Of a stretch of DNA of 64,000 bases, positions 54,016 through 61,726 are shown in pieces. Under the pieces are notes generated by a model. It was not told the DNA's origin and did not search any database. It was given only the letters and a program-made list of their open reading frames with translations. How positions within the stretch are numbered: position 1 is the stretch's first letter; each line of letters begins with the position of its first letter. The stretch is from Mytilus californianus (taxonomy: Eukaryota), in the NCBI RefSeq assembly GCF_021869535.1, contig NW_026262604.1, positions 63,364,001 to 63,428,000 of the forward strand, read 5' to 3'. The translations under genes and the position numbers were made by a program.

Positions 54016-54883
54016 AATTGGAAGTTTATGACAACATTTGTCGGCTACATTCCGACAAAAACAACATAGCAAACAGGTCGTCGTGTGAATCTTATAATGA
54101 TGTATTTCCCATTTGGTAATAGTGGCATAAATTTAACTTTAAGTTTTAAAGCTCAGTATCATAAATATTTGACTGCGACATAAAAAGTTTTAAAGGAAAC
54201 GAATTTACGTACATGAAGAGTAACGCTTTTTTTTTTTTTATTGTTTTTTAATAAACAAACAACTTAGATAAATAAAGCATCACCTTTTTTGGAGATATAA
54301 CATTTCACTACACACAGTGTAACAGTGTAGTTTTAGAAATTTATCCCGATATCTATTGGAGATAGACCATCGATTTTTAACTTTGTAATATCCCTAATTC
54401 TATACTGCTGGATTTGCTAATAATTGCTCAAAGATTGAGTTCAAATCATGCACACCGTTTAATGTCGTAGAACTAATCTATATGAAACTTAACCACGACG
54501 TTAGATAAATAGTTTTATTATACTTCACGTTAAAATGCCAGATATGGATCGGCTAATACGAGGGAGATAATTTACTCCATCCCATGGCTCAGCGAGAGAC
54601 AGTTTTTTGAATGTCATCCAATTATGCAGGCCATAAAAAAATGATAATTTAAAGGACAGTGAACTGAATGTATATCAATACTTTTAAAGACAATGCTCAA
54701 GTTCTACGTTTTGGCCTCAGAACTTTAACATAGACTGTCAAAAAAAGACATCTTCCTTCATTTTTGTTGTTTTTCTAATAACTGTAACGTTGTTATGTAC
54801 ATGTCGTCATAGCTAAATACTTCCAATAAATAAAATTCAAAAGGCAATAATGATAGAACATTCAGTATAATAAATTAAAGATG

Positions 54884-55010
54884 CACTTAGCTGAGAGGGC
54901 GATAGAGCAGATTGGTACCCCTCGAAAAAATATTTTCAACTGTGCCTTCCTCTCGGTTGACAATGGTTTCTCGGGGTAACAATCTGCTCTATCACACTCT
55001 CAGCTATGTG
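54884..55010. mobile_element. Second ~127-nt hairpin of the same architecture as 13397-13540
   Basis: CACTTAGCTGAGAGGGCGATAGAGCAGATTGGTACCCC pairs with GGGGTAACAATCTGCTCTATCACACTCTCAGCTATGTG. Confidence 0.55.
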
Positions 55011-56102
55011 TTATTTATATAGAAAGTACACGATATCTTTAAAACAATGTTTTTTCTTGGAAAATGCGAATCCGATTGCATTCTAACACTGTCTTAAATT
55101 TATCAGCAACTAGGCAATGTTTTAATGATTAGTTCATCCGACGGAAGACCAATATGAGCTATGAATGAATGAATGAATGAATATGAATGAATATTTTAAT
55201 ATTAAAGTGCAACCTGAATAAAAACAAACAATTATATTCACATATACAAGTGATTTTCAGCCAGCCAATTAGGCTGATGCACTGTCATGATATGATACAC
55301 ATTATGTTTCCATTATTGAAAATAAAAATAAATAAATAAATAGATATATGTAGGACTCAAATCTATGGTGGGTTCCAAATCTATGGCGGATTCCTAATCT
55401 ATGGTAAATATGACGTCATGCCATCCCAAATCTATGGCAAAAAATTTACACTCCTAATCTATGGCAAGTTTTTTAAAATTTTCTAATTATGACGTCATGC
55501 CATCCCAAATCTATGGCAGATTTTTTACAACCCAAATCTATGGCAAATTTTGTAATTTCCAAATCTATGGCGGATTTTTGTTGATTTAAAATCTATGGCA
55601 AATGTCGTGCAAATGGAAAACAATGCAGTATATACGACCAATGACTTGTCTAAAACAAATGGAGATAAATGACAACGTAAGAGTGTGTTTAAACACTAGT
55701 GAAATAAACATGTTATAGCTGACTATGCAGTATGGGCATTGCTCTTTGTTGAAGGCGGAACGGTGACCTATAGTTGTTAATTTCTGTGTTTGGTCTCTTG
55801 TGGTGATTTGTCTCATAGCAATCATACATGTCATACCACAACTTCTTTTGTATATTGTATAAATTATAAACCACATCATGACAGTAACCAAATTTATAAA
55901 TGATCAATTTAAAAAGCTTAATAAAGACTTCATGATCTTGAAATGATGTGTCCCGTAAACATAAGCATTTTCTACTCTGTGCATGGTCATGTTTAACCGA
56001 CACATTAACCAAATAGTAAGTCATTAAACAACAAGAAAGCAGTTTCTGTTTGTAAAAAAAATAAACACTTTGACTCTTCACATGCTATTTATTTTCTCCT
56101 GA

Positions 56103-59100
56103 TCACATCTTTTTAATTTGATGACGATTTAAATCAAATTTGTATCCTGTAATTTGATCTGTCACTTTATACACTTTTCCAGCAGTAGACGCTGAAATTG
56201 AGTCTATGACCCCTTTCCTGAAATATCCTGTACTGAAAACTGCGGTGCCTTTGTTCATCGCAGGATTCGGTCTGTACATCACATTTTGTCCCTCTTCCGG
56301 ATAGTAGGTAATGTCTTCCCTCAAACCATCGGAAAACTGCTCTAGTGGAAAAGCTGAAATTGTTTCCCGGTGAATTTGTTTATAAAAATCGGTGAGTCCA
56401 GTGTTAAATACCGGTAACTGTTTTTGATTTACATTCTACAAAAAAAAATAGTCTATAAGTATAAACAAAAAGTATATGTTGGCTGAGTGAAATCAAATCT
56501 AAATCATCTAGATAGATATACGAAGATGTGGTATGAGTGCCAATGAGGCAACTCTCCATCCAAGTCACAATTTGTAAAATTAAACTATTATAGGTTACAG
56601 TACGGTTTTTCACACCGAACAGCAAGCTATAAAGGGCCCCAAAAATGACTAGTGTAAAACCATCAAACGGGAAAGCCAACGCGGTTTACTTATTTTTAGG
56701 TTAAAAAAATATATGCAAAGTATAGCAGTTTTAAAATAAAGTTGATATACTAGTAATAACCGTACAAAACAAACTAAAATTCAACTTTTACATTTTGCAT
56801 TTGAATGGTTCAGCATTATTAAAAGTCTTATACATGTACATGTATACGTGCAGTCGCAACACTTTTAAAGATTTCTATCAAATGCATCAAATTTTATGTT
56901 ATATAGGACAATATTTTAAAAAGTACATCATACAGTTACAAACCTATTCTATACAACAGTATGTAAACAAAATTATTACATATTACGCTTACATAACGAG
57001 CAACAAACTACTAAGGCACAAAGTTTAAAATATAGGACATTTAAAGACAAATCCCAACAAAATCACATACCTGTGGATGAACTGGTACATTTTCTTTATT
57101 TTGCTCGTTATAAAACTTTCTCTGATACATTTGTTTGTAGTATGGACTAACATTTTCCTACAAAAAAATAAACAGAATATTTCGTGTTATTTTGTGCACA
57201 ATTTATCACTTAATATTTCACTGAACAAATAATACATTAATACACATGTAAAAATATTCGTCTAATCTGTAGGTTATACGGAAACTCATACAACAATAGG
57301 TTTTTCTATTTTAAAAAAAAAAATATTTATGTATTGGTTAGGAACAAGTACGTACTCTTAAGATCTAATGTGTTGGTTTTCTTTCTTCTTCTTTTTTTGG
57401 CGTGTGTTGAAAATTATAAACAAAGTAATGCACAAGGCTTAACATACTTACTTGCAAAATAACAGTTTGTGAAAATGATGGTTCGGGCACTACAAAATCA
57501 TTTTCCTGGGTACAATCTGGAGGTAAATTGCCATGTTCTTCATTTACGCCATGGTCTAGAATGTTCATCGCCTCTGCAAAATAAAAACAAAAACTAATTA
57601 ATTAATTTACAGTTAAATATAGCTAAGCATATGTTAAATTTGCATTTATTTTTATCACATGTAAAACGAGTAATTGTATTCATTTTTAGAATTAAATTTA
57701 TAATTTAAATTTGTGTACTTTTATTAGTTTTAAATAATGATTGATTGTTTGTTGGTTGCTTAACGTCCAGTGGCAAATATTTCATGCATGTTCAGGACGA
57801 TAGCTTTAAGTAAAAAGTTCATGCATATGTGTTTAAATCTTACCATGTAAAGTGAGTTCCTCTTCATTATTATTTGTACTGGCGAATTGGTTTCCACCTG
57901 AAGACTCAGTTAAGGATGAGTGTAGCACATCAACAGATACTTCTGGGAGTTCTTCCTCTGACTCATTTTCATCAACATCTAATTCGGCGTGCTCTAAAAA
58001 GTCTCGTTCTTCTTTAGTAAGAGAAGCATAAGGTACCTTTAAATACAAAGGTATGTTGAAAAGAAGATGCTCTTTTTATAATAAAAAATAATTTTCAATT
58101 TGTTTGGTGTGAAAAAAACCGTTGTTTTGTTGGTTTGTCTTTATTTCCTGACATTCGGCAAGTAATAATTTTTAAATAAATCTATAATGTAAAAATCTAT
58201 CTCAACCGCAAGTTAAAAAACAAATACTGATATGAATAATAACCCTAATCAATTTTTTCTTAAGACACGTCTCATGATAGCTTATTTACACAGACTAGAC
58301 TGCATATTCTTACAACTTAAGTCACTAGACGGCACATTGTCACGGTAAGAGACATAACATTGACACAGCCTACGGCTAAAAATAGTACATTTGCAAACTA
58401 AGGCGCTATAGTGCACATGACACATTCTATGGTACTTGAATGCACATTGACACAGCCAACAGCCCTAAACGGCACATTGACAGCCTACGGCCCTAGACGG
58501 CACATTGACATAGCCTACGGATCTAGACGGCTAATTGACACAGCATACTGCCGTAGCCAGCTTATTGACACATCCTACGGTCCTAGACGACTTATTGACA
58601 CAGAATAGCTGTAACATAAAGTAAGAATACTACTACAAATGACCTAATTACTAAGATTTTTTTATAACACAAAGACTCAATTTTTAATTTCCGAAATAAT
58701 AATTTAAATAAAATTAACGAAGTAAAGTAAATACCTGATCATCAAGCGGCACAGCAAAATTTGGTCGACTAAAAAATAGCTGATATGGAGTCTTTGGACG
58801 TGTGGCCTTGTTTAGCCTGTTGTTATATGCGTAATAAAATTCAGGAAGTTGATCGGACCAGTCTGAACGTTCTGACATTTTAATTCTAAAATACTCAGTC
58901 AGTGTGCGATTAAAACGTTCCACTCTGCCCTGACTTTGTGGGTGGTATGGTCTACCATGCATTTGGACTGTGTCAAATTGTATTACAACTTCTTTAAGAT
59001 GCGAGTTCCGGAATTCTTTTCCATTGTCAGACTGTAGAATACGTGGAGCTCCATATAGATAAATGTAACTGAGTACAACTTTGCTTATTTCAGTAGCACT

Positions 59101-59739
59101 TTTAGTTTTACATGCTTGGCCAAATGCAAATCTTGAAAAACAATCAACGATATTACATATGTACTGATATCCTTTATGAGGTGGCATCTTTTTTAGGTCA
59201 ATTTGCCATCTTGAATTTGGATAAGTTGCTGGTATTGGGCGTCTTGTTCTTTCTGTTTTTGGTAGAGATATAGCACTTTTACATTGTTCACAGTCCACGT
59301 AAAGATCAAATAAAAGCTTCACGTTTTCCCTTACGACTGGGAAAACAAATCTTCGAATAGATTCATAAATGCTGTGAGATTTTCTGTGATCTAATGCATG
59401 ATTCTTTTTTACTAGATTAATTAAATCCTCCTTTGAAAGACATTTCCTATGAGGAGTAGCTAGGTCAACACTTTTTTTATACAAATGATTCGAAGTCAAA
59501 TCATAAAAATAATTTTCCAAATATTTTCTAACCATTCTATCGTTCAACTGTTCATTGCAAAACTTGATTATTTTTGCGGATCCCCATTTTGGATTTTCTG
59601 CTTTTAATTTGCAAATGGACACTACCTTTGCATAGTCCCTCCAAAACGCTTCTGGATTAGGGTCCTTTGAAACTGGTTTCTTCTTTTCCTTTGCTAATAC
59701 AAAACCTTCATCTGGAATGGTGTTCATGGGTTCCGCCAT
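56103..59739 (-). CDS. Ginger-type transposase, 5 exons (59739-58735, 58036-57844, 57573-57452, 57157-57071, 56435-56103), 579 aa, intact
   Basis: Exon lengths 1005+193+122+87+333=1740 nt, all GT-AG with matching phases (0,1,0,0) and no internal stop. Motifs: H-x3-H...C-x2-C zinc site (HALDH, CEQC); DDE in WQIDL, QSDNG and GRVERFNRTL; start context AAGATGGCG. Confidence 0.88.
58442..58607. repeat. 28-30 bp minisatellite (~6 copies) in transposase intron 1
   Basis: Units like CACATTGACACAGCCTACGGCCCTAGACGG; explains the spurious ORF 58411..58608. Confidence 0.85.
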
Positions 59740-61726
59740 CTTCAAATTCGGCGGCGGCGACGACGTCATATGGCGTTATTTGATTGTGACGTTATATGTA
59801 ACTCTTTTTCCCGGAAAAATAGGCAATTTCAAAATCTGCCATAGATTTGGAGAAAACAAAAACTGCCATAGATTTGAGACGGCATTACGTCATATTTACC
59901 ATAGATTAGGAATCCGCCATAGATTTGGAACCCGCCATAGATTTGAGTCCTACATATATTTCAAATTTAGACGAAAATATAGTAAGGCACGATATCAATT
60001 GACCACAGATTGTCTGATAGTAAAACAGTTCAAAATAAAGTTAGATACAAGCTTGCTGTAATTAAAATAAATGTTTTAATTTAATGTTCGCTGGTAGCGT
60101 ATTTAAATCTATGTCTATCACTCGGAATGTGTTGCATGTAAATTTGTTCAAAGATCCTCTCTTCAGACACTACTGGTCCATCCAATTAAATAAAAATTTG
60201 ATACTATTGATCCGTAGGGACTATTGATCCGTAGGGTTATTTAAGGGTAAATAGGGTATTTAGTTTATGGTTTGGTAGATATATTCCTGTCAACCAACCA
60301 ATATGGCCGTTATGTCTAGAAATAGAACATACTAGGGTAAAATGTAGGTACTTGTCTTCTACTAGTATCTTGAAAACCATAATAGATACAACAAATACGA
60401 GGATGTGGATAGGGGTTTTATACAGAATAGAGAATTATAGGCATAAAATATAAAGAATAGAGTAAAATGGACAGAAAAGAAAAAGAATAGAAAATAATGA
60501 GGTGCTAAAACATAAAGAATAGAGAATAATGGGCAAAAGTATAAAGAATAGGGAAAAATGGCCAAAAAATTAAAGAAATACAGAAACGAAGGACCTCCAT
60601 CTAGACCCTCAAATACTGACTTGGAAAAATACTACAAATGACAGGATCTATCTACTCTTCATGTGACCCAATACTATCAGACGGCACCCTATGGGAGTTA
60701 TTGCCTTCAATGACGATTTTTGGCCTATTTTAGTGTTGTTATCAATTTTCGTTAAAAAAAAACAGAAACTATTAACAATAGATATAATCAGATATTAAAA
60801 GATCTATAACGTTACAAAAGAGAGGAAAAAGATACCAATGGGACATTCAAACTCTTAAGTCGAAAATAAACTGACAACGCCATGGCTAAATAAGAAAAAG
60901 ATCAACAGACAAACAAAAGTACACAAAACACAACATAGAAAACTATAGACTGAGCAACACGAAGCTCACAAAAAACTCGGGGTGATCGCAGGTGATCCGG
61001 AAGGGTAAGCAGATCTTGCTCCACATGTGACACCCGTCGTGTTACTCCTGTATAATACTTTGATAAGTTATATGCAAGACAATTTATACAAATGAAACCA
61101 TCAATTGTCACCATCAGACGCTTCCATTCACGTCATACGGGCTATGATGGATAGATGACTCATCAGCAATCATACCATGTCTCCTTATTTTTATGTTAAT
61201 AAAGGAATTATAGTCTTTAAATAATGGTTTTTGACAAAATCAACCGTTTTTGACTATAAGTATCTTGAAAACTGAAAATGATAGGCAAAAATTGAAAACA
61301 GAAATTAATAATCAACAATACAAAGTCGACAAATATGACTGAAGCAATCAATAGTCTCCATGTGAAAGTTATTGTCCTTGAATATATTTTTTTTAAATAG
61401 AACTTTATTTAAATTTTTATTATATTTTATTTGGAAAAAAAATCCCACTTTAATAATATATCATATTGTCAATAATTACCGAACCAACTGCTCATAGACA
61501 TAAGGCAAAACATCGACTGACAGTTAGCACTACCCTTGAAACAGAAAAGCACCCGTATTTTACTGTTTTGGTCTTTTTTTTTTTATACAAAGCTATCAAA
61601 TAAGTGCAATCTGATTAAAATCCAGACCTATATTAACTCGCGTGCTCGTACATATAAGTAGAACGAAATCAGAGAACTATATTTTAATTAGATTGCAAAT
61701 AAGTGCAATGTATCATTCTAATATTT

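Follow-up and report, generated by a model that had tools for sequence, protein, structure and literature searches.

The locus examined here raises the question of whether a complete and possibly mobile DNA transposon, with a spliced transposase gene that a list of open reading frames (ORFs) fails to reveal, lies in the genome of the mussel Mytilus californianus. The window, meaning the whole stretch of DNA that was analysed, comprises 64,000 nucleotides (assembly GCF_021869535.1, contig NW_026262604.1, positions 63,364,001 to 63,428,000, forward strand), and all positions given below without a locus name refer to it. An original prediction, made from the letters of the window, had placed a complete Ginger transposon at 55349-59954, with terminal inverted repeats (TIRs) differing at 4 of 91 positions, a perfect TATA target-site duplication and an intact five-exon transposase. 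We regard this segment as very probably a full-length copy of a young Ginger2/TDD-type cut-and-paste family in the Mytilus genome, carrying one spliced transposase gene on the minus strand. Recent activity of the family is supported by the divergence of its copies, and it may possibly still be mobile.

Ends, target site and genomic copies

The segment 55349-59954 is a 4,606-bp element between inverted ends, and its predicted limits, mismatch count and duplication were all confirmed. The 3' TIR (in transposase orientation) occupies 55349-55439 on the plus strand and begins with TGTAG; its 91 nt show four mismatches to the other end. The TIR at the 5' end (59864-59954, minus strand, 91 nt) closes with CTACA. 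The inverted-end sequence of the window element is TGTAGGACTC...GAGTCCTACA. The same four mismatches are present in all nine full-length genomic copies, indicating that they are a feature of the family and not decay of the window copy, whose ends carry zero private changes compared to the other full-length copies.

The target-site duplication TATA lies at 55345-55348 on the left and at 59955-59958 on the right. The element is inserted in a member of a dispersed repeat of about 355 bp (55158-55348 plus 59955-60114), other members of which are 92-96% alike and supply the empty site. In one of them, L039, the same left and right flanks (92% and 95% identity) are joined by a single TATA; L039 is a paralogous empty site, by which the boundaries of the element and its duplication are fixed.

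The original prediction had proposed copy number and divergence across the assembly as a check. The search covered the same assembly (1.65 Gb, 175 contigs), which holds at least nine full-length copies including the window copy, three long partial copies and one 80% paralogue. The pairwise difference among the nine copies is 0.28-0.81% (mean 0.56%, that is about 99.4% alike), and in every full-length copy the similarity breaks off exactly at TGTAGG...CCTACA, with unrelated flanks on both sides. Each copy has its own 4-bp duplication (TATA in seven copies, TATT in one, TATC in one), preceded by A and followed by T in 9/9 cases (A-TATN-T target). These values fit a recent burst. Segmental duplication or assembly redundancy, in place of transposition, would agree with the high identity of the copies and with the presence of two of them on one contig 18 kb apart, but the exact limits of the similarity, the unrelated flanks and the separate duplications make this explanation very improbable.

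Both subterminal regions contain repeats of the motif AATCTATGG, the core of CAAATCTATGGC: nine copies at 55355-55604 (plus strand), which are candidate transposase-binding sites, and five at the 5' end of the element (59830-59947, minus strand), a stretch within which RNA coverage begins. The palindrome TGACGTCA, whose sequence is that of a cAMP-response element, occurs at 55411-55418 and 55490-55497, with near-copies at 59763-59770 and 59887-59894; these positions lie within the end repeats and beside an upstream ATG of the transposase gene, and the palindrome could be a promoter or binding element.

Two features were observed outside the element. A perfect 17-bp tandem duplication (ACTATTGATCCGTAGGG twice) is located at 60203-60236, just beyond the element, and a separate 470-bp dispersed repeat is located at 54551-55021 (at least 2,361 first-look candidates, 82-85% identity). 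The latter holds an internal inverted segment, its query positions 336-469 matching in reverse too.

The spliced gene and its protein

The ORF list contains a 351-aa ORF at 58714-59769 (minus strand), plus unrelated small ORFs, and none for an exon of 87 bp, as the original prediction had pointed out. Splicing of five minus-strand exons, all of them AG/GT-bounded, gives a total of 1,740 nt, that is 579 codons and a single terminal stop, and the predicted hidden, stop-free protein of 579 aa was thereby verified. An in-frame upstream ATG at 59769 adds ten residues (589 aa). Exon 1 (59739-58735, 335 codons) encodes a zinc finger and an integrase core, and is separated by intron 1 (58037-58734) from exon 2 (57844-58036, 193 nt). 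Then follow intron 2 (57574-57843), exon 3 (57452-57573, 122 nt), intron 3 (57158-57451), exon 4 (57071-57157, 87 nt), intron 4 (56436-57070) and exon 5 (56103-56435), with 110 codons and the stop at 56105-56103; all four introns are of the GT-AG type on the minus strand. Exon 4 is missing from the ORF list because it has no start codon. An AATAAA is located downstream of the stop codon (56093-56088); the transcript would start near 59860-59890 and end shortly past this signal. The public gene models of this mussel gene are truncated (213-470 aa) and miss the last exon.

The exon model was compared with RNA, as the original prediction had suggested. The data were contigs of runs X1-X3 (one study; presumed RNA) and the raw reads of run X21, declared as stranded RNA-seq; the X21 junction counts were drawn from about 6% of the run. 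The junctions of all four introns (58036/58735, 57573/57844, 57157/57452 and 56435/57071) were found and agree with the model; the skipped stretches terminate in CT..AC on the plus strand, corresponding to GT..AG on the minus strand. A single 1,000-nt X3 contig spans at least introns 1, 2 and 4, X1 and X2 contigs span introns 2-4, and X21 contributes junction reads for intron 2 (n = 7), intron 3 (n = 2) and intron 4 (n = 2). In the X21 exon pairs the first mate is always on the plus strand, as expected of minus-strand RNA in a standard stranded library. The X21 depth is about 5 over 59717-59887, about 0 past 59888 and nil outside the element edge, indicating that transcription begins inside the 5' subterminal region without read-in from outside.

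A second junction present in the RNA, 57555/57844, makes exon 3 shorter by 18 nt. The first 18 nt of exon 3 (57573-57556) are missing in 7/9 genomic copies, with an in-frame loss of six residues, and the deletion recreates the AG acceptor (...GCAG/ACC). A loss of the acceptor in these seven copies was considered and rejected as an alignment artefact. The X2/X3 contigs carry the private 57904A of the window copy and the long exon 3; the letters and junctions of X21 and X2/X3 taken together thus indicate that at least the long and the short exon-3 forms are both expressed. Transcript letters of X21 and X3 at 57517 (C>T), 56228 and 56345 match none of the nine assembled copies, which would point to further copies or alleles in other individuals.

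Exon 1 encodes an HHCC zinc finger (aa 114-153, 59400-59281) followed by the rve integrase core (about 59223-58939; Pfam rve, E 4.5e-16). The catalytic residues are D181 (59199-59197), D238 (59028-59026) and E274 (58920-58918), the last two separated by 35 residues as in a DD35E core, and the exon aligns to residues 54-275 of the prototype foamy virus (PFV) integrase (E 1.5e-16). Exons 2-4 form an acidic, low-complexity linker. Pfam gave nothing above noise on exons 2-5, and its scans of every exon product and of the full-length relatives returned rve-type families only, with no OTU, Ulp1 or PHD; the Gypsy/Ginger1-type zinc-finger model PF17921 had no match. YPYY and GPY/F motifs were not found in the linker after the core, judged by eye without a profile, and the C-terminal barrel described next could correspond to the GPY/F module in diverged form.

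Exon 5 (110 aa) matched no Pfam family and has 26 sequence relatives only, among 1.84 billion representatives. The domain also stands at the end of full-length relatives in other molluscs, some of which are uninterrupted ORFs on transcript-like short contigs (P0008, P0009). Its residues 40-110 (56318-56106) are predicted to form a five-strand Tudor/SH3-like beta-barrel, with a predicted local distance difference test score of about 90 over residues 70-110 and a conserved R-x-N-P-x4-G-T loop (R55, N57, P58, G63 and T64 of exon 5) between the first two strands. In an exhaustive structure alignment of the exon 5 model the best matches were Tudor, chromo-barrel and PWWP domains (Z 8.9-8.2, root-mean-square deviation 1.4-2.6 Å, 53-61 residues); these are read as a fold class and not as a function, since such Z values are at the upper edge for unrelated small barrels. 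For the same model, Foldseek found nothing in the PDB at E <= 0.001; its hits at E 0.008-0.1 were uniformly Tudor domains. A protein atlas offered weak leads only, to the murine leukaemia virus integrase C-terminal domain (0.82) and to Chromo (0.81). The C-terminal domains of retroviral integrases are SH3-like barrels, of the same general class. The most economical reading of the model would be that exon 5 is the C-terminal DNA- or chromatin-binding domain of the transposase, and it might also act as a methyl-mark reader.

The best structural relatives of exon 1 being retroviral and Ty3 integrases, the locus might be taken for an integrase-only remnant of a long terminal repeat (LTR) retrotransposon, an endogenous retrovirus or a Polinton. 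This is the least credible of the explanations considered: the terminal repeats are inverted, not direct; the unit is 4.6 kb long, with one gene and rve families only; and it has a 4-bp duplication and precise bounds at the empty site.

Repeat insertions had been said to fall only in an intron and in the 3' region of the element, sparing the exons. Both pieces are real. The one in intron 4 (about 56509-56681) belongs to a dispersed repeat for which a first look gave at least 2,761 candidates, 83-90% identical; the 3' non-coding one (55712-55846) has an 88% match to other copies within the window and a high RNA depth on both strands. The 3' piece belongs to the same repeat group, as a diverged member that runs in the opposite direction. 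No match appeared when the two pieces were aligned directly, and their kinship is visible only through shared third copies and opposite-strand read joints. They are not the sole internal repeats, introns 1 and 2 containing a 30-bp tandem array (58442-58603) and a high-copy fragment (57735-57802), respectively. Both pieces are present in 12/12 long copies and missing from the 80% paralogue and from short derivatives of the family, indicating that they entered the founder of the subfamily before the burst. The exons are indeed free of repeats, but they were inherited in that state from the founder copy and consequently provide no information on selection acting on the window copy.

Position among integrase-like transposons

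Bao et al. 2010 (PMC2836005) described Ginger1 by CCGG or CCGT duplications, YPYY and GPY/F motifs and a C-terminal OTU or Ulp1 domain, and Ginger2/TDD by inverted ends of 45-297 bp, TGTNR termini, a 4-bp duplication within RTATAY, and H2C2 and DDE domains only; introns were tabulated only for Ginger1. The window element resembles Ginger2/TDD (Ginger2-1_NV, Ginger2-1_LS, TDD-4) in its cut-and-paste anatomy, its single integrase-like transposase with H2C2 and DDE, its 91-bp ends, its TGTNR...YNACA termini (TGTAG...CTACA in 9/9 copies), its 4-bp duplication inside an AT-rich RTATAY target and the lack of OTU, Ulp1 and PHD. It differs in having four introns and a Tudor/SH3-like C-terminal barrel in an exon of its own, a domain not described for Ginger2 in PMC2836005. 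With Ginger1 it shares the integrase-like transposase, the TGT...ACA termini, the 4-bp duplication and a number of GT-AG introns within the Ginger1 range (0-4); however, the window family duplicates TATA, TATT or TATC and has no protease domain, whereas Ginger1 duplicates CCGG or CCGT and carries OTU/Ulp1, YPYY and GPY/F. Membership of Ginger1 was rejected on the TATA-type duplications and the absence of an OTU/Ulp1 Pfam match.

The retroviral and Ty3/Gypsy integrases (PFV, 3OYI/3L2Q) have the same succession of an HHCC N-terminal domain, a DD35E core and a small C-terminal beta-barrel. Unlike them, the window element has no reverse transcriptase, gag or LTRs and moves as DNA between inverted ends, and no similarity in sequence could be detected between its barrel and the C-terminal domains of integrases. 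GingerRoot (PMC6839031) also combines an integrase-related DDE transposase with inverted ends (about 100-150 bp), but its 6-bp GC-rich duplications and TA...TA termini contrast with the 4-bp TATA and TGT...ACA observed here; the length of the duplication and the termini exclude membership of GingerRoot.

The element therefore fits a Ginger2-type assignment by its ends, target and domains, and it was filed as such on these structural features because every testable Ginger2 feature was present and the Ginger1 ones were not. The Ginger identity originally proposed stands on the ends and domains, and is refined to Ginger2/TDD-like (TATA in A-TATA-T, no OTU/Ulp1) instead of Ginger1. In a tree of 38 integrase-like proteins, with no curated Ginger2 or TDD sequences among them, the window clade consists of eight molluscan and unnamed rows with support 100 on a long branch, the deep forks being unsupported. 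A bolder proposal is that the window element and its molluscan relatives are a third lineage of integrase-type DNA transposons, beside Ginger1 and the KRBA2/SCAND3-type Ginger2, with a Tudor/chromo-barrel reader that would tether integration to marked chromatin, and still mobile in living mussels. We consider this proposal doubtful; if true, the reader domain would be the DNA-transposon counterpart of the chromodomain of chromoviral integrases.

Other Ginger families were observed in the same genome at G000:C88:47964660-47965643 and G000:C57:10617996-10618706 (uninterrupted exon-1 frame, 57% and 62% protein identity), together with many more broken relatives at 42-55% identity, indicating that the genome hosts several lineages of the window clade. 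In a survey across bivalves, 98 Ginger elements were counted among the DDE transposons but not described (PMC10294476), and in the literature we found no paper on the family of the window element, nor on a Tudor-like domain in Ginger.

State of the family and its derivatives

The spliced frame is open in three of the nine copies (579 aa in the window copy, 573 aa in the two others) and interrupted by frameshifts or stops in the remaining six. The copy called intact is thus open, as predicted, but it is not unique. The two 573-aa copies (L002, G000:C46:25870906-25875492; L007, G000:C46:25893849-25898443) are on another contig, 18 kb from each other and oppositely oriented; their flanks are unrelated, as would be expected of local hopping.

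The codon differences of the other copies compared with the window copy comprise 9 distinct synonymous and 23 non-synonymous changes, and the variable sites have a similar frequency in the exons (31 of 1,689 columns) and outside them (64 of 2,825). Such variation is what neutral decay following a recent burst would leave, and not what would be seen in a gene kept by selection. The original prediction had left open whether the element was recently active or selectively maintained: recent activity is upheld by the young copies with their own duplications, and selective maintenance is not supported, given the 9:23 ratio and the six broken copies. The same ratio bears on the idea of a domesticated, non-mobile host gene derived from an integrase, of the GIN1, KRBA2 or SCAND3 type. 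The window gene has introns and is expressed, and relatives bear database names such as 'KRAB-A domain-containing protein 2-like' and 'SCAN domain-containing protein 3-like'. Nevertheless, this idea is scarcely tenable for a gene that shows no synonymous excess, is surrounded by intact inverted ends and a target duplication, and exists as nine or more near-identical copies at unrelated sites, with an empty site at hand.

Several observations weigh against the interpretation of the window copy as a member of a young Ginger2/TDD-type family. The tree separates the window clade from the KRBA2/ZBED-like clade, whose proteins are Ginger2-derived (PMC3575427), and also from the OTU-bearing rows, at forks that are unsupported. 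The RNA depth is low, and the RNA is not assignable to the window copy, so that transcription is demonstrated for the family. X21 contains letters without counterpart in the window copy: 57517T (6/6 reads), absent from all nine copies, and 56101T and 56113A, found only in L008, a copy with a premature stop. In exon 5, the X2/X3 contigs depart from the window copy at one to three sites. Finally, two amino-acid changes in the linker (S380 and N391) are private to the window copy.

Part of these observations would also suit a family that burst recently and is now dead or fully silenced, the open frames surviving by virtue of youth and the transcripts being background or piRNA (PIWI-interacting RNA) precursors. 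The six broken copies, the neutral appearance of the differences between copies (9 synonymous to 23 non-synonymous) and the low RNA depth, with part of the reads coming from a copy with a premature stop (L008 alleles in X21), speak for it. We nonetheless consider it rather unlikely: the frame is uninterrupted in three copies, whose catalytic residues are intact and whose ends are unmutated; the mRNA comes from the sense strand and has the correct splices; and the distance of 18 kb between two of these open copies, whose flanks differ, is what local hopping would give. The open frame, the intact catalytic residues, the unworn ends and the spliced family mRNA make the window copy a candidate autonomous active element.

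In such an active Ginger2/TDD-type element, the transposase would be catalytically active, bind the repeated AATCTATGG motifs in both subterminal regions and cut at the TGT...ACA ends. The element would then reinsert at A-TATA-T with a 4-bp stagger, as integrases do, giving the TATA duplication. The C-terminal barrel would most likely act in the role of the integrase C-terminal domain, binding DNA or chromatin.

The genome also contains at least 40 elements of about 1.07-1.13 kb with the same TGTAGGACTC termini and TATA duplications (e.g. L025:1148-2274; L024-L030), in which the 5' end, with the start codon and eight codons, runs directly into the final 22 nt of intron 4, followed by exon 5 and the 3' end. 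The possibility that they encode a conserved C-terminal-domain protein was rejected: the fused frame is open in only one of the eight examined (L029, 114 aa), and they consequently look like plain deletion derivatives. They could be mobilised by a Ginger transposase of the window clade. A word-based protein search with the C-terminal part of a natural paralogue (P0005) returned five Mytilus proteins only. In two gene models from Mytilus galloprovincialis and M. edulis (P0121, P0122), one a leucine-rich repeat/thrombospondin and the other a fibrinogen-domain host gene model, part of the sequence shares 80-93% identity with the P0005 C-terminal domain; this part could have been captured as an exon from a short derivative, or reflect an erroneous annotation.

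The element is of an ordinary kind and no surprise in principle; its C-terminal barrel is an undescribed module for the Ginger group. The exon model corrects the annotation of the mussel gene, and the family is a marker for insertion polymorphism in Mytilus. To our knowledge, nearly everything known of Ginger elements comes from sequence, and movement of DNA by a Ginger transposase has yet to be demonstrated in an assay. The practical value of the locus is that of a candidate active Ginger element: its family supplies several natural open copies, mapped ends, the A-TATA-T target, candidate binding motifs and an RNA-verified cDNA structure, and these natural open copies permit a direct test of a retroviral-type integrase as a cut-and-paste enzyme.

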